Of a DNA stretch of 64,000 nucleotides, positions 22,801 through 63,800 are shown piece by piece. The stretch comes from Klebsormidium nitens (taxonomy: Eukaryota > Plantae > Klebsormidiophyceae). The notes beneath the pieces were generated by a model, which was not told the DNA's origin, made no database searches, and saw nothing but the letters and a program-made list of their open reading frames with translations. Position 1 is the first letter of the stretch; each line of letters starts with the position of its first letter. The stretch covers positions 1-64,000 of the forward strand of contig DF237313.1 in assembly GCA_000708835.1 (NCBI GenBank). The letters run 5' to 3'. The position numbers were made by a program, and so were the translations under genes.

Positions 22801-25800
22801 AGGTCGGCAATCACAACCGGTCAGGTCACCCTGCAATCAGCAAAAAAACAAACGAATGATTACGGTATCATTCTAGATGAGAATTCGATCGAAGAAGACG
22901 AGGAGCGGATGTGTTTGCAGATTCGCGAGGATGTAAAGCGGGGAGTGTTCGTAGAGGGGCTGTCGGAGGTGGCAGTCCACGGTGTCGAGGACGTCATCCG
23001 CCTCATGGTGCAGGTAAAAACTAGCTTGCTGTAAAAGGCCGGCGTAGGAATGGCTGGACTCGAAGTTCGTAAAGTGGGCCCCCCTCCGTTCAGTGCTCTT
23101 TAGGGAGTGTTAGAGGACGTATCAACTCAGAAGAAAACGGAAGTGTGCATGCCAACTTTTGTCACAGTGACATGTTCAAACTGACTATGGAGAAGCCAGG
23201 TTCTGCACCGTTCCTTAAGGATAGCAAAGGTCGCACTCCGAGACCCAGCAGATAACCCGAGCGCCTTAGAAGTTCCTGTCGACGAGTAAGCAGTCGTTGT
23301 CTGGCGACCTCTGCAGGGCGCCAACAATCGGAAGGTCGCCCAGACGAATATGAATCACGAGAGCAGCCGGTCTCACAGCGTGTTTACGTGCACCGTGGAA
23401 GGCAAGGTAGGGCTGCCGCTCTAGAGAATGGACGGACGAAAAACTTCCTCGTCAGTCCCCGCAACCGACTGATTGTGACTTGAGAGACACATAGCGTGTA
23501 GCCAGAACTTCACTGGTAGATCATTTTGCATGTCTGACGCCCTGGTATCGTTCTTCGCTTTGATACTGGTTTTCGAGTCCGCAGACAAGGCCTCGTCTTA
23601 CGTGCTCTGCAAAAGTGCTTGAGGCTAGAATTGTGGGGCCTTGCGTATACCTGGGTGCCAGATCGAAACGTGACAAGGCGCAAATCTGCATCAATGAGAA
23701 TCCTGCTTCTCGCAACCAGCGCTGGAATCTCGTTCACATTCAGGGCCTAAAAGCCAAAAGCTTTCCGACGTCAACTCTGCATGCACCTTTCTAGTTCTCA
23801 CCGGTGCCTGTTCACACTCCCCGTCTTTCCCACGTTGCAGTACGTGTCTGACAACGTGGTCAATACCCGCTTCTCCCGCCTGAATCTGGTCGATCTCGCG
23901 GGATCGGAGCGGCAGAAGAGCTCCGGCGCGGGCGGGGAACGCCTCAAGGAAGCGTCCAACATCAACCGCTCGCTCTCGGCGCTTGGGTGCGCAGCTTTCC
24001 CAATTACTAAAGTTTTCAAATTTAAGGCGTGTTGCTTCTTCCACGTCGAGCTCTAACACCAGTTGGGATGCTTGACTGTCTCACGGATGTCTATCGCTTT
24101 ATCAGTGCCTTCCGTCGAAGCTTGTCTTGGTTCAAAGGAGGGGGGTAAACGTTCAATTCCGCCTTTTTAAATCTAGCCTTCGACTCTCTCAAGGTTGCGC
24201 ATCGCTTTATCCGTTCCTTCCGTCGAAGCTTGTCTTGGTTCAAAGGAGGGGTACACGATTGATTTCGCCTTTTCAATCTGGCCTTCGACTCTCTCAAGGT
24301 TGCCCGTTGCTTTATTCCTTCCTTCCGTCGAAGCTTGTCTTGGCTCCAAGGAGGGTTAAACAATTGCTTTCGCCTTTTCAACCTGGCCTTCAAATCCTCT
24401 CCACTCCGAGGGTTTGTGCAGGTGTATCTGCCTAGCGATGTACTCTGTGCCTCATCTCAGGCCGTACGTCCTCGTGACGTCAGTCATTGCTGCGGCTCTC
24501 TGAACTCTTTGGTCGCTGGAAGAATACACATGCCCCGACGTTGACTCAAAAGCTATTCTTCGCTCACCCCTCTCCCCTGCAGGCTCGTCATCATGACGCT
24601 TGCTGACGTGGCCGAGGGAAAGCAGCGGCACGTGCCTTACCGGGACTCGCGCCTCACGTTTCTGCTAATGGTGAGCCGTAATATTCTCAGAGTTTCTGGC
24701 AAACCTCGACCGCAAAGCTGCCTTTTCCTGACTTTCTAAGTGGCCGTAGGGGTTTCCAGAGTTGTCAAGAAACGAACCTTCGCTTGGGCGCTGAAAGGGT
24801 TCAAAGACTAGCTTTTGGGATACGCAATCAGGATCGCCCCAGCATTGAATTGATTTTTACTGTAAGTACAATCTACTTATGTCTCTAGAGCTGCGAAAGT
24901 CTTGTGAAAATTAAGGTAACAGCCTTCCGTTTACGTCCTCCCAAGTGCAAATGAGTAGCTAAATCCGACGTAGATGATGTGTATGCAATCTCCCTATGTG
25001 CCATTCTTCTTGGACTTTATTCTGCAAAGCATGAAGCGAAGCTCGTTTCCATGCAGGACTCGCTGGGCGGCAACGCCAAGACCATCATGATCGCCAACGT
25101 CAGCCCCTCCACGGCGTGCTTCAGCGAGACCTTCAGCACGCTCAAGTTCGCGCAGCGGGCCAAGTTCATCCGCAACAAGGTGGGTGCCACGTGGCCTGCT
25201 GTGATTGGCTAAAAGCGAGCAGTTTTTGTTTCCGAATTTGTCCGCACCATACCACCCTCTGACAAGGTCTCGTCCTCGACTTCCCTTCCGCACGCCAACT
25301 ATGGAATTGTTTCTCGTGTTACTCCATCATGTTGACTTTTATGTTCAGCCGGGACAGGGTGCGAGCTGCTGAGAGCGACGGTGCGTTCCGCTGAAGTCGG
25401 CTTATCGGTCAATAATTCGCAAGCTGTGGCAAACGAGTGGTGACGTAACGAGAGCTGCTGCCTGACGTCATTTCTGTGGTTCCCATGCTCCGGGCTGTGG
25501 TGAACGAGGACACGAGCGGTAACGTGATAACAACCACGCCTTTCTGGCTGACGTCATCTTTTCTCTCTTCTCCTGCAGGCCGTGGTGAACGAGGACACGA
25601 GTGGTGACGTGGCGTCCCTCAAGGAGCAGATCAAGAAGCTGAAGGAGGAGCTGTGGCGCATCAAGGGGCCCCGGCACAGCATCTCGCCGCCCTCGGCAAA
25701 GCACCCCGGCGAGTCTCCGGGCACTCAAATGGTGCCCGGGAGGCCGTCCCCGGTTACCAAGTCAAAGGTGGGCCTTGAATCCTACAACATAGTGAGATCC

Positions 25801-28800
25801 TAAATGGTAAAATCTCAACTGGTAAACCCTAAAAGTCGGCACAGCATCTCGCAGCCTAGTGCGAAGCACCCCGGGGATTTCCCAGCACGCAGATGGTGGC
25901 CGGGAGGCCGTCCCCGGTCACCAGATCGAAAACGGGCAAGAGCCGCGAGCGCATTGTCTAGAATACTCTGATTTTTTGCAGTCGAACTTCGAAGGTGATG
26001 TTCATAACTGCCCGGATGATCAGAGGCATCCTTCGATGCTAATTACCCTCCCTTACAGAGAGTCGGCCCTCGTCTTTCTGGCTCTAGCTTCGAAGGATGA
26101 CTTCCAGTACTACATTGACGCTAGCAAACAAGTATGGGGCCTTTTGCGCTCAGCTTGCTACCGTTCACTTTCCGTCCCGTAGCTGGAAAAACTAGAGGCG
26201 GGTCTCGCGGGCGCGGCCAGCGTGAGCTGGCCGCAGACAACACCAGGTCGCTCGCCGCTCGCTCGCTGACCCAATCAACTCAAAACCTTGCACGATGTCC
26301 CAAACCCTCACACCTTACATACCCAAATGCAAACCACAAACCTTCGACGATTCTTACATTCCCTCCCGCAGTTGAAGAAACTAGAGGCGGTCCTCGCGGG
26401 CGCGCTCCGGCGCGAGCTGGCCGCAGACAACAAGGCGCAGCGCCTCGCGGCCGACATCGCGGTGGTGGAGCGGCTTAGCCGACAGCACGAGCACGCCGCG
26501 AGCTGCTCCAAAATGGTGGTCAAGTTTCGGGAAGATCGCATCAAGCGGCTGGAGGCCCTGTCGCGGGACGTGTTGCCGGTCGACGAGTACTACCAGCAGG
26601 TGAGAGCTCCTGGAACAGGGCCTTTGGAAATGTTGGGGAAATTGCTTGGTTCAAAAAGCTGTCGAGAAGTTCTCGATTGCGGCGGCGCCTCTGATGAGCT
26701 GAGAACTGGCGAAGGGTCTGGACGATCGACTTCAAGGAGAGCGATACGGCATTGTTTGCCGGCGTCACTTGCAACTTAGAATACCGGTCGAATTTTATTT
26801 TCGTGAGACGTTTGCGGGGTTCACCTCGATCTGAAGCGACTCAAAAGTTCTATCCGCCGATGATAGAGCCACATTGGGTAGCTAGTGGCGGTGTGTTCGT
26901 TCGGGCAGATTTGAATCTGCCCTTGCGGGGCAATGCTTCTGAATCCCCGACTTCCGTAGGAGGCAGACGCGAGGCAGGCGGAGATCGAGCACTCTTTGTG
27001 CGCCCTTCACTGCTCCGAACCTGCCATTGATCCGTCAAGTCGAACGGAGGCAATAATAGTGTGGCAATGTCCGCTCGGATCAACGGGCGCCCGGGAGGCG
27101 GTGGGGATTTTTCGGTGGTTGGGTGGGTCTGGTTGCGGAGCGCGTACATGTTTGGGTGAGGGTTTCTGGTTTTGTGTGCCTGGGACTCGGATCTTAGTCA
27201 AGCGACTCAGAGTTCAAGCGAACGTTGCCGGTAAAGCAATAATCACCTCTTCAGGTTTCGCTCTGTAGGAATAGTACTCGAAGCAGGCGGGAACTCCAAC
27301 TTGATATTACTCGCCGAGTATCATCCCTTCAATTCGACGAGTCGTGATCAAACAATACCGGTCACTGAGCCCGGCCCTCGGTTTCGCAGGAGGTGGACGC
27401 CCGGCAGGCGGAGATCGAGCACTGGAAGGAGCGCATGGACCGGCACCCCGAGGTCACGCGCTTTGCGCTCGACAACCTGCGCCTCCAGGACCAGCTGCGC
27501 ACGTAAGTCCTCGGAAGCGTTTAAGCTGACTCGGCTTTTGTACTTCAACATTTTGCCGCAAGCTGGAGGAAGTCGACTCGAAGGGAAGGGCTCGGCGCGA
27601 GCCCTTACTGGAAGAAGTGGTTACGGTGCGTTGATACCCAAACATTCTGAACTCGTAAAGGAAAGCTCTGCAGAATTTTGGGAGTCGTAAAAGCCTTTTT
27701 GACGACTCGTGGGTTTGGGTCTCCACGGGTGCTTTTGAGGTGCACAGAGGACAATAAGGCGCAACTTGCCTGATGCGAAACGCAGTTGCTTTCGAGCGAT
27801 TGCTTGAGGGCCTTGTCCAGTTGTACGCAGGATGCGATTCTATGCGCTGGTCATTCCTTTTCAAAGCCCACAGACCAGAGTAAGCGTCGTAACTCGAAGT
27901 TCGAGACTGTGACGACTAAATTCCACCTGGACCTGCGGAGATTATGGGATCAGTGCGAGGGCAAGACGCAAAACATGAGCTTGAGACCTTGGAAGTCATT
28001 AAGTATAGCTACTCTTACAATCAGACGGACGACAATCAAGAAATGAGTAACTAGTGCACAAAAGTCGGCCTCCTCTAATCTCCCCGCTTTCCTCCGTGTA
28101 GGCTACAGAACTTCTATAAAAGGCGGAGAATGTGTATTGAAGGGACCTCAAAATACTTGGAAAGACTCTACTTGGAAATAGATCTAAGTTGCTCCTTCCA
28201 TTTTGTGCAGGCTGCAGGACTACTGCGAGGGCGGGGAGCGCGAGCATTTGCTGGAGGAGATTGCGACGTTGCGCGACCAACTGATCGAGGTGCTGGACGC
28301 CAAAGCGCGTAACGACCCCGACATCAGGAGCTCCATCAGCAGGGTAAGCGGCGCGTGCGCGGTGCGTAGGGTCCGTTTCCTCTTATATCATTTGAGTAAT
28401 ACAGAGCTGATCGACAATGTTTGCAATAGCAATCATGAAGGCAGAGGATGATGCAATCTCGTCAAGACTGTGTAACTGTGAAAGGGCTGGTATCTGCACG
28501 TTTTAAAGGCACTCTGTTTATACAAAACCGCACTCCTACAGAAAGTGCTAGAAGGTCGACCCTAGACTGACTCCCTCTCGGTACAACTAAGTAGTGGTCC
28601 TCTTTAGCAACCCGAGATCTGACTCCTGTGTCCCGCCGTGCTCTCGTCTAGGCCAGCTTGGGAGGGGACGCTCGGGCGGCTGTCATGGCCCATCAGCTGG
28701 AGTCCGTTCGTCATGAGGTAAGGCGGTTTGACAGAATCAAGAAATCCTGTCAAGCCATTGTTCCTTTTTATTTCGAAAGTGCGCCAGAGCGAGGACATCC

Positions 28801-31800
28801 AAGAGGATTGCAACCGTTGCTCCTGGGTGTTAGCCTAAACGCCATTGCGCATCACTGAGTCTGCGGTTCCGCAAATCATGGGAGGACTCTCAGCAGATGA
28901 TTCGCTCACGTCTAGCGATGCCTATTGGGCCACCTTTCCGAATGGCGCTGCCTTTCCATTCCCGAGCACTATTCTTGCTGTCACCCATACTGTTGCAACC
29001 GCCCACTTTCATGAAGCTTCAATTTTGCAGAAGTTAGCTTAGTAAAGTAAGCTGACCAGCCCGAAACGGGTGGGGTTAGTTTGGGGGTTTAGGGTGGGTA
29101 CGGGTGTGGAGCAGGTGATTTTGTCGGTTAGATTTCTGTGTTAATGTCAGAGCTTACTTCTGCTAGAGCGTACTTTTGCTAAACTGAAGAGACATCTCTT
29201 TTCGCCCGCCCCAGCTGGACCAGTGCCGGCGCGAGGCCGCCCAGAAGCACCTGGATCTTAACGCGGCGCTCGAGAACAACGGCGCGCTCGGCGCGCGCAA
29301 CGAGGAACTAGAGCGGGAGCTCGCGCAGCTGCGCGCGGACGCGCTCCTGAAGCCGCTCGAAGCCGCGGAGGGCGACGTGGCGCGGCGCGAGGGGGCGGGG
29401 CTCAGTGTGAAGGAGCTCGAGGAGGAGCTGCAGGAGGTGCGTGGGATGATGACACGTGGCGACATGGGCGAGCTATGTGAAATGGTTTTGAGAACTTTGG
29501 CTTGACGAAAAGCGGGTGTTAGGCGGAAAAATAGGCTGAAGATTTTGTGCCGAAGAAACGGGGATAGGCGAATGCTTCTGCCGATTCGTTTGACGTTGTT
29601 ACGCTTCTGAACCTACGGGGAATTGTGAGGTGGATCCTCGCACTTTTTGAAGGGACGGTAAAAGGCAGTAAATTCTGTTCTTCTTTGCTGCAGGCGAACA
29701 AGCGGATTGAAGAGGAGACGACTCAGCGGCGCGCCGTTGAGAAGGACCTCTTCAACGCCCTCAACGACGTCTTCGACCTGCAAACGCAGCTCGAGGTGAG
29801 TCTTCCGAGAATGGCAGAATGTGACAATCTGGAAGTCCTACCATTTCGCTATATCGCGCTTTCGTTTCGGTTGCAACTTTACTGTTTTCCTGTGCAAGGA
29901 AGATCACCCTTTCTACATGCAGCGAATAATTTGCAAGTTTTATAGAGGGGATCTCGATCCCCCACAGGGAAGAAAGATGGCATTATGCGGTTGTTCTCAA
30001 ATCATGCAACTTTATGCGGGTGTTCTCAAATCATGCAACTTTATGCGGGTGTTCTCAAATCATGCAACCCATGTAGGGACTGAACGAGTCGTGTCATGTT
30101 GCAGAAAGAGAAGGAGGCTTCCCAGGACCTGGAGGTCGTGCGCGCCCACGTGGCAGACTTGGAGGAGGCCGTCAAAGCCGCAGAGGTGGGTAGATTCTCG
30201 AGATCGAAGGCCATCCTTGACGGGACACGCTGATTGACGGACAAAGACCTGCTGTATGAGATCAGCTCACTCAGCACACGCAAGCCTACCTTGTCTTCCG
30301 TTGCTCTAGCGAGTGAACTGCACCAATTCAGACTGGGTGCCGATTGGGCATGCTCCGCGAATATGCAATTTGACGTCCTGCGAAGACGCGTTTGGGAGCG
30401 GCCTCAAAATGCTGACGTGTGCCTGACGTGCAGGCGGCCGCGACGGAGGCGCGTGCGGAGTGCGAGGCGCTGCAGCAAAAGATGGCCATCGCAGAAGAGG
30501 CCCACGTGGATGCCCTGCGGGAACTGGCGGAGGCGGCGGACTGCCAAGAGCAAGGCTGGAGGAGCAAGGTGCGTCATTGGTAGCCTGATCTAGTGCGGAC
30601 GCATTTCGACCGAAAGCGGCTCTTGCAGTCCTACGGCATTCATCGCGAGAGTTTTGGGACGGGCTCAGACGAAGCTGTACATTGTGTGCCTTGAAGTGGG
30701 CATCGAACTGAAAGGACGGCAATACGCACTTTGTAACCCTGAAAGTTTACCTCCTCAATGGACGAACGATTTGAGGCGGTACGATGAAGGAGGCGCAAAT
30801 TATATAGGCATGGTCACCGCACACTCTGATATCGCGTCGCTTCTGATTGTAGGGGTACTGTTTCCTGTGCTGCCAAGCAACCAACAGTAGACAGACAGAG
30901 ACAGCCGCTCTGAGTTTCTGAAAGAAGTCGTCGTATATTCGAACGTCTCTCCTCCTTGTATCAGTCCGTAACAACAACTGTAAAGCTTCCCGCTCTCTTG
31001 CTTAAGATGCTTATCACCTCCGAAGCTTACAACCTTCGGCACGCCCACCTTCCACCATTTCAAGCCCTTCTCCGACTTTTTCACGTTCGCAAACTTCGCT
31101 TGTCTTGTTTGACAGGAAGCGGACTGGGTAGGCGACATGAAGAGCCTGAGCGGCCGCCTTCTGGACGCCCAAACTGCCCGGGAGACCGCAGAAGAGCAGC
31201 TTGAGGGGCTCACGCGGGACCTGGAGACGGCGGTCACGGCGGCAGAGGAGCATCAGAGCAACGCCGAGAAACTAGAGGTGAGAGGAGGTTACGCCGTGAG
31301 GCCCGCGTACTTTTCATGCTGTGCGGAGCTTTGCGTGGCGACATCTGCGTTCTTCACTCTTTGGTTTCATATTGCCTTCATTATAGAATACAGTGGAGAC
31401 TGTTCCGGCGCACGCCATCCGTTGCTTTCATCAGTAGACTCAGGGATATCAAGCGACAAACACCGGGTACTTATTTCTCAAACGTAGCAAGCTCTTCACC
31501 TATCCTACTCATCTCGCATCTCGACACCTTGATTTTTCCATAAAAGCAAGGGGAACAAAAGAGGCCACAAAGATCTCAACCACCGTCATCGCCCTCTTGA
31601 CTAGGCCCGCCTCTTGGCTCGGACGTCCGACTTCCAGCGCCAGCTGTCCGCCCTGGAGGAGCGCCTTTTGGCGCGCGACGAAGAAGTCGAAATTCTACAA
31701 GAGGACCTGGAGCGCGAGGAGGGTTTGAGGGCTTTAGAGGGCGACGCGGCCGTCGACCTGGCGGTGCGGCGCGTGAAGAGCGCGGCCAAGGCGCAGATGC

Positions 31801-34800: not shown

Positions 34801-37800
34801 GCAGCTGCTTCAGACCATGGCGGAGCACGCGGCCCGAGAGGCTGAGGTGCAGGGGACGCTGGACCGGTTGGCGACGGCAGAGAAGGAGAAGCAGGCCGGG
34901 GAGCGCATCATGCAGTCGCTCGAGCAGAGGTGCGGGCCAAATCTCGCCTCACTTTTAGCCGGGGAGGTTGAAGTGTACCGATTAGTGTTCATGCTTGATA
35001 ATTATGCAGAGGGCTTTGCAAAGCAGGCCGGGGAGCACATCATGCAATCACTCGAGCAGAGGTGACCGCGAAATCTCTTTCTTCTACTCCTAGCAGAGAG
35101 GATTGGAGTGCACCGATCATTATGATTCAGCGCTTATGTTTGAGAAGTATGCTGGGAGCTTCACAAACAGGCCGGGGATACAATTCATGCAGTCGCTCGA
35201 GCGGAGGTGCGGCTCAAAGTCGTGGGATATGCAGACGACAAGCTCACGGAGGAAAGCTTTTGGAGGACGGAGGATTCTGCCCTCTGTCGGACCGATGATG
35301 CTATGCGTTGCTTTCTCGCGGGCTCACCGACTCTCCATTTTCCCTCTCTGTTGTGGCTTGGACGTTCTACCGATCCGCATTTACATAGACGTTCCATTGA
35401 CTCACACTCAAAAAGACGTATATTAGTCCCCTCTAGTGCCAGGGTGTAGATTTGTTGCTGTTGTCGCCAGATTAAAATCACACAGCAGGAGATGGACAGG
35501 AAGAAATGTGTTTTGTGCAGGCGGGACCGCATCCGATGTTCTGGACCACAACTTTACTCAACAGTTGGTTCTGAACTCTAGTCCCCCTCTCGCTTTCTCA
35601 GATGTTTGCCCTCCGAGGCGGGCCAAGACTCGTGTATCATGTAATATTCAACCGGACACAACGTTCGTCGACTCGCACGTTGCGAAAGCTCGTTGAGCGG
35701 TATACCAAAGATTCGTACAAGCGGAGATCCATCTCTTAGCGGTTTCCCGCACTCTACTCAGGCTGGGCGACGCGACTGAGGAGCTGCAGCGGCTGGTGGA
35801 CGCCCAGAAGCACAAGGAGGCGGAGGTGCGCGAGCTGCGCGCGCGCCTGTCCAACCTCGAGTCCGAGCACGACGCCGCGCAGGCCGAGATCCAGTGCCTC
35901 GAGGAGCGGCTGCTGGCGGCCACCGAGGGGATCGCCTGTGAGTGTTCTACGCTTCTGGAGGAACGCCCCGATCGGGAATCGTTCACTGACAGGGCTGACG
36001 ATCTGAGCTTCATTTTTCCTGAATTCTGCGGCACGTCCGGCAGCTGGCCGGACGATGGGGTGGCTCCATGCATTTTGAAAGTTTAGACAAAAACCGTACA
36101 TTCCTGAACAATGTACTTGGTAGCCGATAAAGTGAACCCTAACTCTGCAGCGTCCGACGGTCAAGTTCGGCGGATGTACCGACGACAAAAATGGCTCCAT
36201 GCACCCTCTAGTCTTATATTAAACCCCTAAACATGAGACCCATATACTCCCTGAAACCTTGGTAAGCCAACAACTTGACTTTTGAACTTTTCCCGCGTCT
36301 GAAGGCAAGTCCGGCGGGTGGCCAAACGAAGGGACGGTTTTTTTCGCACCAACGACGAGATGGCTTTTTTCGCACCCTGGGGGAATATAATAAGATCTTC
36401 TAAAACATAACCAACAGCTGACAACCGGTTTTCGAATCTGCAGCGTCCGGCGACAAGTTAGGTGGTTGGCCAGACGACGAGGTCGCCGCGGACGAGGCGA
36501 AGCTGGACTGCATGGAGGAGGCGCAGGAGCACCGCGACCGCGAGATCGCGGCGCTGCGCGCGCGGCTGGAGGCGGCCGAGAAGGAGCACGAGCGGGGGGG
36601 GCTGCACCTCGAGGAGTTCCTGGAGGAGAACGTGGCGCAACCGAAAGCGCAGATGCAACAGGTGAGTTGGGTATCAATTTTGTTTTGAACGATTATTTTC
36701 AGCTTTACTAGGAGTCAGGGCAGGAGCAGCGAATAAAATCATGGAGGAGAACGTGGCCCCTTTGCGAAGTGCGGTTTCCCCATTTTCCCAATCCACTTGG
36801 TAATCTCACACCCTAAGCGAGAAAACCTCGTCCAAACTTTTCCACCTGCTGCATCTGCGCCCCAAAGATGCAGGCGGATTTGCGTGTTATTGGGCGGAAG
36901 CTTTACTCAGCCGTTTGGAAAGGTGTGTTTCTCCATGTCGCTACATGGCCTTCTTGCTCGTGCTTGAATGAGGGAGAACGACCGATCCTAGGGGATCGAA
37001 TCCTGTTTGACAACAGGATACGTCGAGAGAAGTCGGCACAAAGTGCTATGCTTGCCGTCGATTGATTACTGTCTTTCCTTACTCTTATCATCCGAAAGTA
37101 GGACCTAATGTCGTCTTCAATCCCCTTTTGCCAGGTGTCCACCGAGCAGCACGAGAAAGCCCAGGCTGTGGCGGCGCTGCAGGCCCGGTTGAATGCCGCG
37201 CAGGAGAGCGAGTCCGCGCTGGAGGGCCGCGTGAAAGAACTAGAGGCGGCGATCGAGGAGAAGACGCGCGAGGTGGAGCAGGCGGTGCAGGACAAGGGGG
37301 GGGTCGCGGCGGAGGAGCTCGTGGCGGTGAGTTGAACGAGCCTTGGAGGTCTTTGTGACCTTTGCGAAGCTTGTGACACCTTATCGGCACTCGGATTTGT
37401 GTTTGTCAGGATTCTCTACCATAGAAGATGGTGTCTCCAAGCCGCGCGAAGAAAGAAGTCTTCCGCTGGTTCTTGGATGTTGTTTGCGTCCTTTTCCAGT
37501 CGCGTTAGCCTGCGTGGAGATAACGGTTTGGTAAATCAGAACTGCCTGCAGATGAGAAAAGAGAAATGCAGTTTGGAAGGAAAGCGAGGTCGAGATTGGT
37601 CAGACATCCAAGACGAGCAGGGTTAGAAGAAAAATACAAGTGGAACGAGAAACGAAAGAAGCCACAATACGTTTTTGTAGATGCTGCAAGAGCGCCTCGA
37701 GGAGGCGTCCGCCCAGCTGCGCGCGACCGCGGCCGCGCTGCAGCAGAAAGAGCGCGAGCAGGCCGCGCTCGCGGACCAGCTCGTGGGGGCGGAGCGGCAG

Positions 37801-45748: not shown

Positions 45749-46266
45749 CCCTTTTTGCCACCTTTTTTTGCCTAGGCTTTTCGGTCCCATGCACTCGATA
45801 GGCACATGGCATTCAAGCATTCAACTCTCCATTTCGATCGGGTCGCGTGTCATATAAGAGAGGGTTTCAGATTTCAGTAGAACCTACAAGGTATATGACG
45901 TCAGAATCATCATATTTTCATCATATACTACTCCGCGCTTATAATGACCGCTCCGTTAAAATGCAAAAATGGACTAATTGGCTGCTGGGGATACTAATTA
46001 GTTGCTTGCAAAGCTTTTGTGCAATGCTTGTAAGGGTGCGAACTTCGTCCGGTAGTATTGCGGTTGATGGTACGGTGTTCAGAGGCATTGAGGCACTTTT
46101 AAAAATTCTCTCATTAAGCTGCCAAAGCAAGCCAGACTGACGGGGTAACTCGATGGCTGAACAACACATCAGACTTGTTTCATGCAAAAGGGTATATCCA
46201 CATGGGACGAAAATGGAATGATCTTAAAATTCTGAAGAGGATAGTTGGTTTAAATGAGTGTTTATG

Positions 46267-46617
46267 GGAAGACGGCAGAGGAGTGGTTCCTAAGCCTCTG
46301 GGGCGTTGCCCCGGCCAGAGAGAGCTCCCGAAGGAGCCCCCCCTGCCAGACGGAGGCCCTCGGCCTCAACGTCGGGGGATCACCCCCAGCGAGCAGACAC
46401 CCCCCGGGAGGGGCTCACGGCGGAAGGGTAGAAAATTCTACGCGACTTCTTGCTATCTGATGCGACACGCCAGCATCCGTCGAGCTTTATACGGTTGCAA
46501 GAAACGAAGCTTTTGTGGGCTACATGGACCCGGTAACGTCACCTGCCGTCCAATCTGTCAAGTGGCAGGATCGGACGGCAACGAAGAGGTTTCCCTCGAC
46601 ACACGACCGCTGTCCGC
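46267..46617 (+). repeat. Unidentified structured dispersed element, copy 1 (158 bp conserved hairpin core at 46267-46424 plus a diverged tail)
   Basis: The core is 155/158 identical to 56213-56370. The tail aligns with 56371-56560 and with the reverse complement of 52425-52548. Strand is arbitrary. Confidence 0.92.
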
Positions 46618-47903
46618 GGTAGATCGACGCTGCGAATTAGCACGATCCGAGCAACTTCATGGAGGCCGAAGGCAAAACAAGGCTACAACAAGGGTTTCCT
46701 TTTGCTATACAAGACTGCAGAGTAGGATTCCTTACGAGAATGATGAGACATCTAACATAGAATTAGACGAGACCTGTAGTGTGAGACCTGACCGTTCCGG
46801 CTTGAGTAATTTTTGTGGCGTAGTTGAGTGGATGCTAAAGCATCGCAGAAGCAACGTGGTAAAAGTACGTTTCTCTACTGAAATCGAGTTACTGCCCGGC
46901 ATGCGACCATAAACTGAATTCCTTACTTGAGCAACGTCGTGGCACCACGAGAGTTGCAAATGTGCTCATTGTTTCATTGAGTTGCCAACAAGAATTACCA
47001 GACGGTGGAAGTTTCAAAGCACAAGGCTACTTTAGTCACTCTCAAAATCAACGCTCTCTCACCATTTTTAGTACTGCAGTAGGCTCAATTGAAGCAGTTT
47101 AAAGAGCGCAGAAAACCAGAGCAAGGAAATCTACGAAATTAACCTCTTAAGATCCACGTCAAAGTAGCCCTGCTGGGCTATTGTCATGCCATCGTTCAGC
47201 AGCTCAACCATCATGTTGAAGTGGTACGGATTGGCGCGTTGAAGACTACAATGAAGTGGATCTCGCCCCCAGTCTTCAAAGTTGGCCTGCCAGGCAACAT
47301 GAGAACAAGCTTCAGCACAAGCATTCTTGAAAGCACGCTTCTATCATTTTTAAAGTCGTCGTGAAGGCGGACCCCAGCTTGTGCACTTCGAACCTCGCGG
47401 GAGCTGATCACAAAGATGATCATAACGGTAATCATTGTGTGCGCGTGACATACGAGCAATACATGCCATGACAAAACCCATTACGGGAAGCTTTGTACGC
47501 TTCAACGCTCTATGTTAGATCGAACACCGTTGGCAGCGTGGCTCGGCTGAGATTTTCGAACAATTGATGATCTATTTCTACATCGTTTTGGTTGTTCTTC
47601 ATGAGGCCACGTCTAGCATTGAAGTGCATCGAGTCGGAAGCACTCTGAATCACTGCCAATGCTTTGCTAGGGCATCGATGTTGTTCTGCTTTCAAGTGGA
47701 GAGCAAAGTGTACTTTGACCACCATTTCGACTGCCAAGCGGGGCCGGGTGACAACAGATGGGAATCGGTCGATTCTTCACCTGCCCAAGAAAACCCGAGC
47801 TCATTCTTAACCCTTGCACGATCAACTGATAGGAAGTAACTCAACGAGAGTTTCAAGGAAACTGAGTGCTCTTAAGTGTCCGACTTCCACCAGCCTGAAA
47901 CTC

Positions 47904-50900
47904 CTAACACCAAGCCGCTTGAATTGCAACAACAGGCACCCGCTGGGCGACGGCCTGCCACGCGTCGACGGTTTGCCACGTGTCCCCAGTCGCTTCCTCC
48001 TTCTCGAAATGGTCAACAAACTTCCTGGCTCCACGAACCGACACAACGTACCCATCGAAGCAGTCATTTGTCAGCGTCCCTTCGACCAGACTCTTGCTGA
48101 CGTCCTCCACCGCGCAAGGGTACACCCTCTGTGCCAGGTCACACTCCGTCCGCGCGCGCACAAAGTTGCTCCACCCCCCTACCAGGAGGAGATCGTAGTT
48201 ATCCATGTCAACCAGCATGTTGCACTGATTGAGGCGGTTAAGATCCATAAGATCGGTAGACAGGGCTTCCTTAGCCCCAAGCACTAACCCGGCTTCGAAC
48301 CCGTCGAGAAGACCGGGGTCGCTCAAACTAGAGGCGCCGGAAGTAACTTGTTCTGCAGAATCGGCAGAGCTTGATGGCTCCCCATTAACGACCCTCTGAG
48401 CTTCATTACTAGCGGCTTCCGTATCAGCTAAATTTTGCGGCTGCGCTCCTTCAGAACTGGGCCGCAAGAGAATCTTGTACGCGGCCACTCGCGCATTGCC
48501 CGAGTCATGGGTCGTCAGCCCGAGGCTCTCCAGACGTTTCACGGCGCCTGTCCTTTCTCCACTGGAGCTCCGCCCTCTGCTTCTATCTCTTTCTTCCACT
48601 TTGAATTCGTTGCCGGATGCGCGCACTTCGTCATCGCTATCCTTCTCAACCGTTTCGGTGCCACCAAACCGGCCCTTGTCTTGTTTCTCTGATCCGTTGT
48701 CGTACGCTAAGAGAGCAAGGAGTCGGTCCTGCGCCCTGAATTTCGCCATTCCTGGCCGTTTCTCCACTTTATACCGCACCAATCCTTGGAGGCCGCGTAG
48801 CACCCCCGTCGTATACGCTTTCATCCCGTTCAGATCCGGACCCAACACTTCGTCCGCATACGCATGCATCCGGTTGACCATAGCGTCCGCCTCCTCTCCG
48901 TTCGCCAGAACCCACTCAATCGCCGCCGTCAGATTGCTCAGGTTGTAATCGACGGGCACGAAATGCTCCCACGGCCGCAGTCCCAGCTCATAATACTCCC
49001 AGCACGGAGTCCGCTGTTTCAGCAAAACCGTCCCCATGTGCAATTCGTGCTTCAACCGGTTGGCCCACCCACAGTTGCCCTCCACATGGATCACTGCCCG
49101 GTACGCCTCCTGCTCCGCCCGGGACAACCGCGGCCGTCCACGTGTCACCATCCCCGCGGCCCACTCCCGAAATCCCCCTACCTGGTCCGTGTCGGACAGC
49201 ATGACGTCATACAGCTCCGGCCGCGACCCCGCGCGCACTAGAAAAACCAGCCGCTCGCGGCCGCAGCGCTGCCACGTGTCCTCGCTGACCGCCACCTTGT
49301 CTCCACCCCACCCCCGGTCGTCTGCGTCTAGGAAACAGCCCCGGCCGCCGCCCCCCCGGAAGACCGCCTTGCGGATGCGCAGCGCGGGCGAGTGCGCGGC
49401 GCGCGCGGCGCGCGCGTCCTCGAACGCGGCGGCCCATCGGCGCGGGGGCCCGTCCACGTGCTCGAAGTAGGGGAAGGGAATGTCAGCGGAGCCGTCGCAG
49501 GAAACGACGTTCAGGATCGGAAGGCTGACGTCAGCAGCGTCAGACACTCTGGCGGGGTGATGCTGTCTCTGAGTCACGATGCAGTCCTGGGCGTGGAGAA
49601 GCGATCATTATGAGAAGAAAATGGAACTCCTGCGTTCTACATCTCAGCCGAAAATGTTCAACGGTTACCACAGCTGAAGATCGACAGACGAGAATGCACC
49701 AACCCAGCGTCTGCAAGAAAGGGGGTTAGTCAGCAGCTTCGAACGGACATTGAGGTCATTTTTCCAGCCGTTTGTACCTCGTATTATCAGTGCATCGTTG
49801 CTGCAAAACCACGTCACTCTTCTGGCCCACCAAAAGCCCTCCGCGTCTACCGTTAATGTCAAGTCGCACTTGAACCATCTACGAGATCTTTCACCCGAGT
49901 GTCTCTCCAGGGCTTTTTTCCGTGACCTGCAGTGCTTTCAAAACAGTATACGCCTATCTTCGAACGTCATAGTATTACCCCTCGGAGGGCGAAAAAATGG
50001 ACAAAATGGTTCCTGACCGCCACAGGTTACGAATGAAAGCTTGACTATCAACCGGTGCCATTCCATTGTCATGAATACGGTGGATTGAACTACGACACAC
50101 CCCTACGGAGGATACGATTATAGAGAAACAGAGAGACACTTTGAAACGGGAAGTATTCCTCGTTTCGACGCACAGTCATTTGAGAAGCTTCTCACGTCGT
50201 GTAGAGAACAGATCCTGCCAGGCTTTGATTCTGTTTAGAGGACTTCTGATAACAGCGCCATGAAGCGAATCTGTTTCGAACATTCTTTTGAGGGATTGCT
50301 GAATAACGTGACAGATGCCCGCTGTAATTCGGGTTCAGATAGTGGTTCAGATGAATTAGATCTCAAAGTAAATCTCATAACAAGCTGCAACTCCATCTCA
50401 GATAGATATATCGAGTTAGGGATGACTGGAAACATACTTTGAAGCGGGTAGGGTCCGGCCAACAGTCAAGTGCGCGCGCGCGCGCTGGCACCCACCTCTT
50501 GGCACAACAGGAACTCCACGTCACCTCCATCTTCAATGTCCCGCATTATTTCGCTGATCAGTTCCAGTCGCATGTTGTACCGGAAATGCATAAATTCCCA
50601 AGGAAACCTCCCTCCCCTGTGCTCGTAATACAGCTTGCCTTCAATAATCTGTACGTCCCGGCACGATTCCCGGTCCCCCGATCGAAGCCCACTTGCGTTG
50701 TGGGAGCGGAAACTGGGTCTAGTGAGTACTCCTCAAGAGCCTGTGTGACCATTTGTTGGATCAGGGGAGAAAGGGGAGTGAGACTCCCCAGAGCGATTCG
50801 CTTGTCAAGGCTCGGACGAAAGTGGGTTCCAGCTGGCAACCTTGCGATTGATACCTCTCTCAGACGGGCATTCAGTGGATTCATAATTGAGGTGAGCGTT

Positions 50901-52400: not shown

Positions 52401-52548
52401 TCTCCGTCGCTTTCTTCATCGAGGTCAGCGGTCGCATATCGAGGAAACCTTTTCGTGGCCGTCAGATCTAGCCACGTGACAATTTGGACGGCAGGTGACG
52501 TTACCGGTTCGTTTCGCCCACAAGACCTTCGATTCTTGCAATCATATA
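52401..52548 (-). repeat. Unidentified structured dispersed element, copy 3 (inverted; only the tail is visible before the assembly gap)
   Basis: The reverse complement TATATGATTGCAAGAATCGAAGGTCTTGTGGGC...GGTAACGTCACCTGCCGTCC...GACGGC...CGACCGCTG aligns with the tails of copies 1 and 2. Confidence 0.85.
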
Positions 52549-53221
52549 NNNNNNNNNNNNNNNNNNNNNNNNNNNNNNNNNNNNNNNNNNNNNNNNNNNN
52601 NNNNNNNNNNNNNNNNNNNNNNNNNNNNNNNNNNNNNNNNNNNNNNNNNNNNNNNNNNNNNNNNNNNNNNNNNNNNNNNNNNNNNNNNNNNNNNNNNNNN
52701 NNNNNNNNNNNNNNNNNNNNNNNNNNNNNNNNNNNNNNNNNNNNNNNNNNNNNNNNNNNNNNNNNNNNNNNNNNNNNNNNNNNNNNNNNNNNNNNNNNNN
52801 NNNNNNNNNNNNNNNNNNNNNNNNNNNNNNNNNNNNNNNNNNNNNNNNNNNNNNNNNNNNNNNNNNNNNNNNNNNNNNNNNNNNNNNNNNNNNNNNNNNN
52901 NNNNNNNNNNNNNNNNNNNNNNNNNNNNNNNNNNNNNNNNNNNNNNNNNNNNNNNNNNNNNNNNNNNNNNNNNNNNNNNNNNNNNNNNNNNNNNNNNNNN
53001 NNNNNNNNNNNNNNNNNNNNNNNNNNNNNNNNNNNNNNNNNNNNNNNNNNNNNNNNNNNNNNNNNNNNNNNNNNNNNNNNNNNNNNNNNNNNNNNNNNNN
53101 NNNNNNNNNNNNNNNNNNNNNNNNNNNNNNNNNNNNNNNNNNNNNNNNNNNNNNNNNNNNNNNNNNNNNNNNNNNNNNNNNNNNNNNNNNNNNNNNNNNN
53201 NNNNNNNNNNNNNNNNNNNNN
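52549..53221. other. Assembly gap (673 N)
   Basis: Run of N read directly. Confidence 0.99.
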
Positions 53222-55108: not shown

Positions 55109-56212
55109 CGCGGCTGCTCGTTGATCTTGGGCTTGAAGCAGGCTTGACGCTGGTAGATGATAAGCGATTGAGCTCAGCGAAGGCAGAGAACCACGTCAGT
55201 GATAGGTCGATAAGAGGGGAGTAGGATCACCTGTAAGCAAGCGGTAGATTTAAGATCCAAAACTAGAGGTCTTCATGGGCGGGCGATACAGAGAAGCGAG
55301 AAAAAGAGGGGCAAACTTACGTCTCTACGCGGTCACGCGAAACATATTTTAACGTGAAGGCGCGGTTCTTGACCTTTATTGCTTCTGAGGAATTTTAGTA
55401 CCTTGGCTCTGACTTTTGATGACCTTCAACTAGTTATAAGAGGCCTAGAAACCGTTTCATTGGCGGTTATATCTTGGCCCTCTAGCCGTCAACTTTCCGT
55501 AGTCTACGTGAAACCGTTGACGATCAACATGATGCTGCTTCTGTCCTTTGCTCACGTCCCCGACCCATTGAAGCGCATTTGTTTTGACGCCTTTCAGTGC
55601 TTTATGAAATAGGCCGAGTAGCACGATATGGGCGTCACATACATGCACCTTTCATGTACCAGCACTACGTACCAAGAATTTTCGAACAGCCAGCGGCTTC
55701 GTATTGGAATCCATGCGGATAAATAGACTACGGAAGAATCAGCCTCCCAATGACTGGTGCAATAAAAAGTCGATGAAAGCGGGCAATGGTCGAATCGGAA
55801 AAAGTGTCTTCATTGAGCCGCTTCTTGGGTGGATAATCCACCATGTTTAATCCGCTTCTTACGTTACACGTGTTGGATGAACACAGCTATCTATCTCGTT
55901 TTAAAAAATCAATTTAGCAGCTTAAACTCCCAATATGTGATTTGCAGTCCCGACTCGGAGCAACATCTTAGCAGTATGCTTATTGCCTCGCCGCTTCAAA
56001 TATACTTGTCAATGGTCCCCTCCAACATAGCAAATTGTCGCTCTTATTTATATGGATATTGAAGCGCAGCCAATATCTAGTAAGAGGTAAACGCTTGAAC
56101 TTGAGTCCTGGCTGCGAGCAGCCCCTCATATCATTCACGTGTCATTGGAAAGTGAGAGACATAGTGGTCTTGAAAGCTCAATAAGTTGTGGTTGTTCCGA
56201 TAGAGTAGAATA

Positions 56213-56577
56213 GGAAGACGGCAGAGGAGTGGTTCCTAAGCCTCTGGGGCGTTGCCCCGGCCAGAGAGAGCTCCCGAGGGAGCCCCCCCTGCCAGACGGA
56301 GGCCCTTGGCCTCAACGTCGGGGGATCACCCCCAGCGAGCAGACACCCCCCGAGAGGGGCTCACGGCGGAGGGCGTTCCAGCCCTTCAACGCGACGTCTC
56401 GCTATCTGCAGAGCCAGACAGCAGTTGTCGACATTTATATGGTCGCAAGAATCGAGGGTCTTGTGGGCGATGTAGGCCGGTGACATTAGCAGCCGTCCGA
56501 TTCCCAGATGGCAGGATCTGACGGCTACGAAGAGGTCACGCGCGACCGCTGTTCACGGCGTCCAAAGAAAGACGGAG
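56213..56577 (+). repeat. Unidentified structured dispersed element, copy 2
   Basis: The core at 56213-56370 is nearly identical to copy 1. The tail is homologous to copies 1 and 3. Confidence 0.92.
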
Positions 56578-57871
56578 CGCATCAGTGACGAAGCAAATCG
56601 TACAATCCAACAAGACAAGAGAAGATAAAGTTGCTACCCGCCCAACTCGAAGTGTTACATGGCACTGCTAAAGCTTCACAATCCCTTGATACGAATGCAT
56701 GATGTGTGAGTCTGAGCCGGACCAAAGCGGGTCCTGCTCGGAAGATGCCCACCCTCTGCCTCTCGGTCCTCCGGTCTCACTTCAAGGATGCAAGTTCAAT
56801 GAATGACTTTCGATCTCCTGTAAGATGAAAAGTATGAAGCAGACAGGGTTGGTGGAACTTGTACTATCTGCTGCGCATCCGAAGTGCAGTCTGATTACGT
56901 TGACAAGAATGACTTTGGCTGCGGATGAAAGCTGCAGAGAATCTTCGGATGCGCGTTTCAATGCTGCATGGAAGTAAATGAAGTACGACACGAGTCAAAG
57001 TCGTCTCTTTGGAATTACATCCAAGGTGCATTAAATTTGAACAGGCAACTTGGCGCCTTCTCTCGAGACGGGCTCGCCTGAGTGGCCAGTTCCCCGTCGT
57101 ACTCAAAGACGCATTGTCCTCCCACCAAGCGGGCACAGTTCGCTTGCTCTCATTCAGGACGACGTGCACGTACGGGATAGGGCTGCATACGGACTCAAGT
57201 CCTGAGAATTTTGACCAAAATCGACAGTGACGGGCAGCTTCTGCATGCGCATTCACGACGATTGGCATACCATGGCCGGCATTGCCAAATCAAGCATCAC
57301 CGTACTGAGGCCGGCTTTGCATATTGACAGAAGCATAATATCACAGTAGTATCATCACTGCTCCATCACTGCATCTATATACGAGCATGCAGGGTGATTG
57401 TTGAGTGGCCACATCGGCCGGATGCATACGTTACAGCAATTAGCGAGTATGCGCAATTATGTGGCCATCGAGTAATCAGCAGTGCATGCAGTGCACAGCT
57501 ATGTACGTGCTGTGCACAAATTAGTTCTGAACGTCCAAACCAAGCTTCGAAATCGAAAGAGCAGGCCGGTGACCCGCAGATTCCCAGCTTCCGACCGTCA
57601 ATCGGATGCATCTAGCGTTTCGAGCAAAGTTTTCAAAACAGGCCCGCACTCTTGAATATGTACAATTGTTCGCTCCATCTTGCTTCAAAGCCGTCCATCT
57701 CATGCCAAGATACCTTCTCGTCGTTCTGCCCGTCAATAGGCGCCTCACAACTTCGATCACGCCAACTTACTACCCAGCTCTGAACAGTTTTTCGATTAGC
57801 TGCATTTGAGCTTCTGCACAGCCATGTGTCATCGTGACCACAGCTTCGAAGCTTGGCTGCCTGCCTATACA

Positions 57872-60800: not shown

Positions 60801-63800
60801 GATTCCGCACGGGTTCTGCCTCACTAGAGTGAAAAAGAGAATCCTTGATTAACGTCACCTCATATAGCACGGCCCGTCATTGCGCTGATGAAAAAAGAGA
60901 GGACCCCTTGAATCACACGGGGTGGCCCCCTTGGAATGTCAGTTTCTGAAAGCAATTCCAAAATGATGCACGCGACTGACCGTCCAAAGCGCCCGGCCCA
61001 GAGACTGGCGGCAGGCGTCCGCTGACGACATGCACCTGCATAACATTCGCAAGGAGCGGTAAAAGACTTGCAAGAGCGGTAAGACAATTCGCAAGAGCAA
61101 TGAGAATGGTTTAAGGACGAGATCAGTGGCGGAACTCAGAAAGAGAAGCGGGACGAGAGGCTTGACCGAAAACCGCAGGATTGCATCTCCTCAGATTGAG
61201 TGATCGTCGACTCAGCTCATTGACAAAGACTTGAATCAGAGAGCAAAATCGAAAGAAAAAGGCGAAGTCGATGATAATATTGGCCCCATCTACAATGTCG
61301 CATGCTAGAGAGCAAGAAAACCAGAGCTTTACGTAGAGAGAAGCACCACGTTGGATCTGCAAATCGTTTAGGCGACGTCTTTCGTACCAGTATTGCCGCT
61401 CTCCTGAGAAAAGGCACCAGCGCGGCTTGCACGACGGCCATCAGAGCTAGGTCCACGGGAGCGGGTTCGTCCGCATCGGACCGCCGAAGCGCGGCGGCTG
61501 CGAGGAATGCTTGCGCTGCGGCCGCGTGATATGCGACGTTGACCATCGCGAGGGCGCCGGTGTGAGAGGGGAAGCCCACGTGGGTCTGCAGACGAAAGGG
61601 CGTAGGTTAAGGTAACCAAAGATGGTTAGACGGGAGGGTGTTAAATTCAATGGGAAGGCACACGTGGGTGTCCAGCTGCTGGGTTGGTCGAAGCCGGATG
61701 GTAATGTTCTGACCAACTTTAGCTCACACAACTTGACGCTCCTTACTTTGCAGAAGTCGGCGAGCAAAACAGGCATGACACACGAGACGCTCGGGTACTT
61801 TGACCCTTAGACAAACTGGAAGCAGCTTTTGAAGCGAATCAGTGAACAGAAATTTGCTAGGGCTCGTAGCATTGCAACCCTACAGTGCTCAGACCCCAGA
61901 AAAGTGTCTCCGACTGTCAATTGCTCCTTGAGAGGCTCCCTCAGTAACGGAGGCTTGATTGCCTGCACGTAAATGTTTGTGAGGAAGCTCTCGCCAAGAA
62001 GCCCAGAGGATTTGGAAGCAAGCTTTTCAGTTGCTGGCACAGCCACTCTGGGCAGAATAAGCGCATCGTCTCTACCTGAAAGAGGAACACCAGGATCCAG
62101 AACGGGTCCTGTTCCAGCGGCGACTCGTCCGACGCATCCTCTTCTTCCGTCCCCTCATCTGGTGCCCCCGAGGTCGCATCCATAGCCGCGGGAGAGGGAT
62201 CCCCCGTTACATCCCTTTCTTCGAGTGGTTGTTTGTCTACTTTTTGGGGGCCGTTTGCTCCAGCACGAACTGCCGCTTCGCCATCCGAAAGCGCAGCATC
62301 TTTGCCTTTCCGATCGAGAGGACCTGACGCTTCCTTCGCGCTAGGTTCACTTCCCAGCCTACCCCTGAACTGGGCACCAAACTCTGGGGCTGCGTTCGCT
62401 GTCGAGCTGACCCCACTTGCCGCCGCGACCCTTTCCCCGAGGCTGTCACTTTGACCGTTATCTGGCACCCCCATCGGACCTGTTGCGTCATCCCCATTCC
62501 GACCCTTCGGATTAAGCCCACCGCCACAGACAGGGCCAGCCCCAAGCGCCGCCTGCCAGTCTAGTATACCCATTTCCCTTTGCATAAGGGGTTCCTCGTC
62601 GAAAGTGGTGGAGAGGACCGCTAGCTTGGCCAGCGCGCGCAGCGCCCGCCAGTGCGCGCTCGCGCCCCCCCACAGCTCCAAGAGCTCGCCTTCTACCTGG
62701 TCTGAGGAGGTGCCACGTGGCGCAGCCCCAGAACTGCCACGTGTCTCGACCTCGCAGTGGACGACGTTGGCGGCCAGAATGGACCACAGCTCCTGCAAGA
62801 AATTGAGAAACCAGGTGTCGTGACTGAGTTCAGCGCTTTTCCGCGAAGCTAAACAAAAGTAGGCACACGACCGTACTTTGCAGACTGCCATGTTTGATAT
62901 CAAAGACACACTTGAACCCGCAGCTCAGCAGACACCGGATACTTGAGCGTGGAGTACGATTCTAGATTTGCTTCGTTCCTTCCTTTCATATTGCCCGCTG
63001 TGGTCACTCTGTTCTGTCTCTCCTACTTGCTCCCTTTTAGTAAAACTCTCGTCTAGTAAACTACACTGGAAGTCATGTGATGGTTGCCTAAGGAAACACG
63101 TGTTATAGGCAGCTTGACTGATGGCAAGACTGTGCAAAAATCTCGCAGCGCTGACTTGCACCTACCCGCCATACGAACGGAGGGCTGGCCAAGTCCGGCG
63201 CAGGGACGTCCGGTTGGCTGTCCATACGCAGGATGCGGCACTGCGAGCACAGTGGACAAGAAGAAGGGTCAGCTATAACCGATCAAACACAAGGAAGATA
63301 ATAACAAGCTAAGATAATAAGAAGGTAACCGCACTGGGACGGGTGGGGTTTAGTTAGGGGGTTATGGTGCGTAGGCGTGCGGAGCAGATTCTTTTTTAGT
63401 TTAGGGTTCTCGTATTAGCCGGAGCTTAGAATTGTCAGATTTTTAATACCTGATCGTTACCTATATCGACTCAATGTCGTTGGTCTCTGTTAGAAGTGCC
63501 AATTGAGGATTATTCGTGGCAAAGCTGTTGCGGACTTTGTCACCCTCTTTCCAGCTCCTGGGATCTGGCGATGAGCAACGTGGTTGTTATACAACAGAAC
63601 CTGCGCTAAAAAAGCTTTTACTGACCAGGACGTTCCAGCCCTCCGACTTTGCTGACACGCGGCTCGCGAATGCTGGATGGCGCTTGATCAAGTACTGACC
63701 GGAAGCGTCGAAGTACTCAGCGTGGCACCCTCGAAAGACAGTTGACCTGAGCATCCTGCTTTGAATAGTACGTTGTCCTGACCCGACTCAGCAAATCGTT

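Follow-up and report, generated by a model that had tools for sequence, protein, structure and literature searches.

What kind of element is the 158-bp chain of G+C-rich hairpins that occurs twice, almost unchanged, in contig DF237313.1 of Klebsormidium nitens? The original prediction had left three readings side by side, namely a non-coding RNA, a self-processing RNA, or the cis-acting signal of a non-autonomous mobile element. Among algae with a sequenced genome, Klebsormidium is one of the closest relatives of land plants; its non-coding RNAs are, to our knowledge, essentially unannotated, and a search of the literature on Klebsormidium non-coding RNA or repeats found nothing relevant. We considered the 64,000-nt stretch of the contig that was analysed (hereafter the window, whose numbering is used for all positions). 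[quoted passage not shown]

Copies, conservation profile and upstream region

The dataset consisted of two full copies (A and B) and one partial copy (C) from one genome. Pairwise alignment confirmed the near-identity of 46267-46424 and 56213-56370, in which exactly 3 of the 158 positions differ, all three by transitions. A repeat finder returned 46264-46427 and 56210-56373 as direct copies with 97% identity, and blastn with sensitive settings extended the match to 46264-46619 and 56210-56558 (82% identity, E 3e-87). The third copy is an inverted tail (52420-52548) that adjoins a gap of N where the core is expected. The window therefore holds at least three clustered copies, A and B on the minus strand and C on the plus strand, and blastn with 7-nt words found no further copies in it beyond these. 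The coordinates of all the features are collected in Table 1.

Table 1. Coordinates of the features of copies A, B and C in the window, with the identity between copies A and B by segment
Feature	Position	Strand	A vs B identity	Remarks
Downstream (3') flank			50%	
Copy A core	46267-46424	-	98%	3' ~158 nt of the proposed RNA; chain of 5-6 hairpins; 71.5% G+C
Copy A 5' part of the proposed RNA	46425-46459	-		conserved leader and variable hairpin
Copy A variable hairpin	about 46425-46441	-	44% (short variable segment)	stem sequence unlike that of copy B
Leader block starting CAGATAGC	from 46459 (A), 56408 (B)	-	83%	
Copy A spacer, TATA box to predicted start	46460-46485	-	59% (25-26 nt after TATA)	26 nt
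Copy A TATAAA box	46486-46491	-		invariant in A and B
USE-like element to TATA			82%	
Copy A USE-like GCCCACAA	46513-46520	-		21 nt upstream of the TATA box
Copy A further upstream conserved blocks	46521-46645	-	69% (upstream blocks)	three-way alignments
Copy A CAGCGGTCG	46604-46612	-		within the upstream conserved blocks
Far upstream segment			50%	
Copy B proposed ~196-nt RNA	56213-56408	-		core 56213-56370; variable hairpin and leader 56371-56408
Copy B promoter-like unit	56434-56468	-		GCCCACAA 56461-56468, 21 nt, TATAAA 56434-56439
Copy B upstream conserved blocks	56469-56585	-		palindrome at 56492-56525
Copy C upstream blocks	52420-52548	+		palindrome 52458-52492, GCCCACAA 52516-52523, TATA 52545-52548
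Assembly gap	52549-53221	.		673 N; begins immediately past the copy C TATA

The position of the gap is that expected if the assembly broke at a core present in several near-identical copies, and the RNA body of copy C would fall inside it. The same gap hints at more copies of the family in the genome. The annotated genes around the copies are a kinesin (to 44262), a GT90 gene (47904-50546) and a UBR-type ligase (from 57872), and by these positions all three copies are intergenic. The GT90 ORF (47904-49577) shares 100% identity with KFL_003640080 and maps to DF237313.1 of assembly GCA_000708835.1 at the coordinates that it has in the window. An assembly duplication, which the original prediction had named among the outcomes that would refute it, does not account for the copies, since both their flanks and their promoter-side sequence differ.

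Other repeats are also present in the window. A direct pair of 89 nt (29049-29137 and 63322-63410, 71% identity, 34 kb apart) is rich in GGGTT, in GGGGTTTAGGG-like and in telomere-like G-runs, and tandem or near-tandem repeats with a period of 105-190 nt lie at 24057-24374, 25672-25937, 26167-26404 and 34889-35222.

Identity between copies A and B was computed by segment, using unrelated 100-mers as the background (45 ± 3%). Outside the core it is lost abruptly, as had been noticed by eye: the next ~15 nt are 44% identical, and the blocks that follow are at 83%, 59%, 82% and 69%, in this order, until both outer flanks are found at background identity (50%). Precisely, conservation restarts 31-32 nt past the first T of the TATA box, at the distance expected for a start directed by TATA, and the conserved stretch is ~195 nt long (~193 nt for copy A, 196 nt for copy B), ending within one base at 46267/56213. 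As the sequence downstream of the core has no homology between A and B, the element is self-contained. The profile matches, at the level of sequence, what a small gene with an external promoter would leave, that is motifs, a spacer, a transcribed region and then nothing. The duplication is old, given the saturation of neutral positions, and selection, gene conversion or the two together have preserved the core.

In the alignment of the three copies in minus orientation, GCCCACAA, 21 nt and TATA(AAA) are invariant in both sequence and spacing, copy C retaining only TATA before the gap cuts the box. The pattern GCCCACAA-21 nt-TATA occurs nowhere else in the 64 kb, where 0.01 matches are expected by chance; its presence in three copies counts as one observation and not as three, because the copies are homologous. 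The tail thus looks like an upstream region resembling the USE+TATA promoters of snRNA type in plants and algae. The USE consensus sequences given for several algae include ACCCAYAW in Micromonas, ACCCATAA in Auxenochlorella and also TCCCAWCATC, and the core of the land-plant USE is CCCACA (Fajkus et al. 2021, PMC8287931). This core is contained in GCCCACAA, which matches 7 of the 8 positions of ACCCAYAW and only 6-7 of the 11 positions of the Arabidopsis USE, all these consensus sequences being those of other lineages and not of Klebsormidium. As for the spacing between USE and TATA, Arabidopsis has 32-34 bp in genes of RNA polymerase (pol) II and 23-24 bp in those of pol III, and a green-algal promoter with a TATA box tends to be a pol III promoter (PMC8287931). 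The 21 nt found here, with a start site placed by conservation, fit neither of the Arabidopsis classes.

About 130 nt upstream of the USE-like element are also partly conserved. They include CAGCGGTCG and an imperfect palindrome, GCCGTC-N22/23-GACGGC, that is present in all three copies (46545-46579 in A, 56492-56525 in B and 52458-52492 in C) ~25-30 nt upstream of the USE-like element and may be either the site of a dimeric factor or a hairpin. This conserved region is possibly an enhancer specific to the family. It may alternatively be transcribed itself. RNAalifold gave, on the upstream region, a long hairpin with two double changes, but the covariation is not significant, since the pair counts were within those of the shuffles (132-162 of 500).

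With the same promoter and on the same strand, the conserved ~195 nt could be the structured 5' end of a longer pol II transcript, such as an unspliced lncRNA or a small-RNA precursor. The lack of a terminator or of a 3' box after the core would agree with it. We consider this reading unlikely, given that conservation stops so sharply at 46267/56213 and that the sequences downstream of it in A and B are unrelated (50%), so that a longer functional transcript would share nothing else between the copies.

Slightly less likely again is a non-autonomous mobile element or dispersed repeat of ~360-380 bp, of which the core would be the cis-acting terminus for a transposase, a Rep or a reverse transcriptase (RT) encoded elsewhere. 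The unit shares with SINEs and MITEs its short length, its dispersed occurrence in either orientation and its tendency to break assemblies. In its favour are also the one sharp boundary at 46267/56213, the occurrence of three copies in both orientations within 10 kb, and the assembly gap at copy C, which suggests a high-copy repeat. Unlike SINEs and MITEs, the unit lacks internal A/B boxes and, in the output of the repeat finder, terminal inverted repeats, and no long terminal repeats or A-tail were seen on reading its ends. For a tRNA-derived SINE we found no A/B box, no tRNA-like structure and no A-rich or simple-repeat tail at the ends of the unit, and for a MITE or another DNA transposon no inverted repeat at these ends and no transposase, RT or Rep nearby; the neighbouring ORFs carry no RT, Rep, TnpB, transposase or recombinase domains. 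Moreover, conservation in blocks with fixed spacings, rather than uniform, and a non-conserved spacer of 25-26 nt are hard to explain as a transposon end, and a core that is 98% identical among saturated neutral positions is not what the uniform decay of a transposon gives. The copies also include the external upstream region, which retroposition would leave out. With neither inverted termini, A/B boxes nor a visible A-tail, and no transposon ORF nearby, the cis-acting signal of a mobile element is one of the initial readings for which we found no support.

Strand and predicted structure

All six hairpins that had been listed for the core (CAGAGG/CCTCTG, GGGGC/GCCCC, GCTCC/GGAGC, GAGGCC/GGCCTC, GGGGG/CCCCC and CCCC/GGGG) are present, and in the consensus fold the three substitutions are all in the hairpin loops to which they had been assigned. 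Hairpin-loop nucleotides represent 16 of the 158 core positions in this fold, so that finding 3 of 3 substitutions there has a P of about 0.001 if they are uniformly placed, a value that is indicative only because the fold was derived from the same sequences. The proposal that selection or conversion acts on the core is supported, and the restriction of the substitutions to loops speaks for selection acting on the stems.

Folding is 8-14 kcal/mol more favourable for the minus strand than for the plus strand. For copy A the values are -95.7 kcal/mol (z -2.0) on the minus strand vs -87.4 (z -1.2) on the plus strand, for copy B -110.1 kcal/mol (z -3.3) vs -95.7 (z -2.1), and for the two-sequence consensus fold (alifold) -91 vs -80 kcal/mol. 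When the 171-nt core was folded alone, the minus strand had a z of -2.0 and the plus strand was at chance level (z -0.07), from which it follows that G+C content explains much of the richness in hairpins. Folding energy alone is unremarkable for the G+C content of the core, and the z-scores are modest.

On the minus strand the GCTCC/GGAGC hairpin extends to 13 bp with a UUCG cap (CUCG in copy B), and three G·U pairs of this hairpin become A·C mismatches on the plus strand. One loop, GGGA/GAGA, is a GNRA only on the plus strand, which counts against the minus-strand reading. In the variable 5' part a hairpin is found at the same site in both copies with unrelated stem sequences; its alignment contains one A-U to G-C exchange, and its P against shuffled sequences is 0.017 in A and 0.16 in B. 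Overall, the predicted structural signals are consistent but modest, with the power of covariation limited to two full sequences.

These data bear on a third alternative, in which there is no RNA and the feature acts at the level of DNA, as a G+C-rich regulatory or cruciform module or as a recent gene-conversion tract of old paralogous intergenic segments. Hairpins being strand-symmetric, substitutions in loops only would fit DNA palindromes as well; the plus-strand fold is at chance for its composition, and conversion can give 98% identity without selection. We hold this alternative as doubtful and a shade less probable than the mobile element. The 98% block has its edges where the geometry derived from the TATA box would place them, the asymmetry between G·U pairs and A·C mismatches favours an RNA on one strand, and the location of 3 of 3 substitutions in loops (P about 0.001) argues against a random scatter after conversion.

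Highly improbable, finally, is the layout implied by the original prediction, that is a plus-strand RNA or SINE-like element starting at 46267, in which the core is the head and the tail the body: it would account for the sharp 5' boundary on that strand, for the GNRA loop that exists only there and for a TTTAAAT ~20 nt upstream in copy A, but its upstream sequence is not conserved between A and B (50%), it has no A/B boxes, its fold is worse and its long hairpin carries the three A·C mismatches. A non-coding RNA is thus the one of the earlier readings that is favoured, with a different strand and anatomy, since it would be read from the minus strand and the tail would be its upstream region and not a decaying body.

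Comparison with known RNA classes and coding sequences

No family of Rfam 15, whose models cover snRNAs, snoRNAs, SRP, MRP/P, 7SK, Y and vault RNAs as well as ribozymes, matched anywhere in the window at gathering thresholds. At E ≤ 10 only chance-level matches were obtained, to unrelated models of miRNAs, sRNAs and snoRNAs, the best of them with 18.6 bits vs cut-offs of 35-90. Motifs were searched for by regular expressions on both strands.

We rejected a spliceosomal snRNA of the Sm class because an Sm site (RAU3-6GR) is absent from both strands of both A and B, and a box C/D or H/ACA snoRNA because the minus strand contains neither box C (RUGAUGA) nor CUGA and there is no terminal ACA. The search by regular expressions found no pol III A/B boxes, and no P/MRP CR-I, ACAGAGA box or plant 3' box on either strand. 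ARAGORN predicted no tRNA. Telomerase RNA, whose template should be complementary to at least 1.1 telomere repeats, was discarded because neither strand contains a template 9-mer from the Klebsormidium repeats (CCCTAAAA / CCTAAAA) or from the plant repeat (CCCTAAA). There is no T-run terminator directly after the RNA. As regards self-processing, no ribozyme family, be it hammerhead, HDV-like, twister, pistol or hatchet, was found at E ≤ 10, and by eye there is no HDV-like P1 partner at the sharp plus-strand boundary, so that nothing was found in favour of this suggestion.

A coding function was also rejected: the three substitutions are all non-synonymous in the only open frame, stops interrupt the tail of copy B, and Pfam returned nothing. 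Neither the translated core (66 aa) nor a 245-aa ORF containing it, with the core taken as the region, had a match in the protein collection over the length ranges searched. This ORF (46175-46912, plus strand, with a TTG start) spans copy A, is absent from copy B, matches nothing in Pfam and is a spurious product of G+C-rich sequence. Exact-pattern scans with three core segments found no homologues in metagenome, GTDB and viral collections, a result that says little since these collections hold little or no streptophyte DNA.

A candidate family of small-RNA genes

With the alternatives weighed, we regard the element as a probable new, lineage-restricted family of small-RNA genes, a reading that we hold with moderate confidence. 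In the proposed mechanism a SNAPc-like factor would bind the USE-like GCCCACAA and TBP the TATAAA box 21 nt downstream, and transcription would start ~31-32 nt past the first T of TATA, at about 46459 in A and about 56408 in B. The predicted product is an RNA of ~193-196 nt, made up of a short conserved leader (which begins with CAGATAGC in A and is 83% identical to its B counterpart), a variable hairpin and a G+C-rich body of several hairpins that hardly varies, with its 3' end at 46267/56213. Purifying selection, possibly together with gene conversion as in snRNA families, would hold the body at 98% identity, while the neutral flanks would have decayed to background and the promoter would retain only its motifs and spacings. 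By analogy with snRNA-type genes, the RNA would most likely serve as the scaffold of a nuclear ribonucleoprotein particle.

Concerning the polymerase, no run of four or more T is found within 500 nt of the start predicted for copy B; copy A has one T4 inside the RNA, and the first one downstream lies 40 nt past the core. The absence of a T-run after copy B points to pol II with 3' processing of the snRNA type, and the short USE-TATA spacing and the TATA box point to pol III. We lean towards pol II with snRNA-type 3' processing.

Within ~25 nt of the proposed 3' end, copies A and B share on the minus strand a weak motif, ACTC-AT-N3-AAC-N-AAC (46240-46263 and 56186-56209). It does not match the plant CA-N3-10-AGTNNAA box, and could be a lineage-specific box for 3'-end processing or a product of chance.

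Among known systems the U-snRNA families of plants can be compared first. Waibel and Filipowicz, in 1990, reportedly described Arabidopsis U2 and U6 genes with external promoters of type 3 (USE + TATA). Like those families, the element consists of small multi-copy genes with a near-identical transcribed region and diverged flanks, a CCCACA-containing upstream element at a fixed distance from TATA, a predicted start ~30 nt after TATA and a promoter that is wholly external. Unlike the Arabidopsis genes, it shares only the CCCACA hexamer of the 11-nt USE and has a spacing of 21 instead of 23-24 or 32-34; moreover, unlike plant U-snRNA genes, it lacks an Sm site, a 3' box, a T-run and a match to the snRNA models of Rfam, and it has ~130 nt of additional conserved upstream sequence with a palindrome.

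The telomerase RNA of Viridiplantae is transcribed by pol III from a type-3 promoter (Fajkus et al. 2021, PMC8287931, a study that also generated total RNA-seq for species of Klebsormidium). The element resembles this RNA (200-300 nt) in being structured, fast-evolving, G+C-rich, missed by sequence searches and recognised mainly through USE+TATA, and differs from it in the lack of both a telomere-complementary 9-mer and a T-run terminator and in the presence of at least three copies. A further comparison is offered by the trans-species miRNA loci of Cuscuta, where U6-like promoters reportedly drive hairpin RNAs that are not snRNAs (bioRxiv 10.1101/2022.07.06.498962). The likeness is that, in the green lineage, hairpin RNAs that are lineage-specific and lie outside the classical snRNA set can be driven by USE+TATA promoters, and the difference is that the hairpins described here (4-13 bp) are too short for a Dicer precursor.

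We also put forward, tentatively, a more specific proposal: a putative, undescribed class of abundant small nuclear RNA restricted to Klebsormidium, ~195 nt long and G+C-rich, without an Sm site or snoRNA boxes, encoded by clustered multi-copy genes under a streptophyte-algal USE+TATA promoter with a palindromic enhancer, and acting as the RNA core of a ribonucleoprotein particle.

If the element were an ordinary repeat, the result would be an entry in a repeat library only. If the small-RNA gene reading is true, a structured RNA that has several gene copies, a promoter of snRNA type and no counterpart in Rfam would constitute a new family. It would, in addition, contribute to the definition of the promoter code of streptophyte algae, that is the sequence of the USE, the USE-TATA spacing and the choice between pol II and pol III, a kind of code that earlier work used to find telomerase RNAs, and the promoter could serve as a cassette for the expression of small RNAs or guide RNAs in Klebsormidium nitens.
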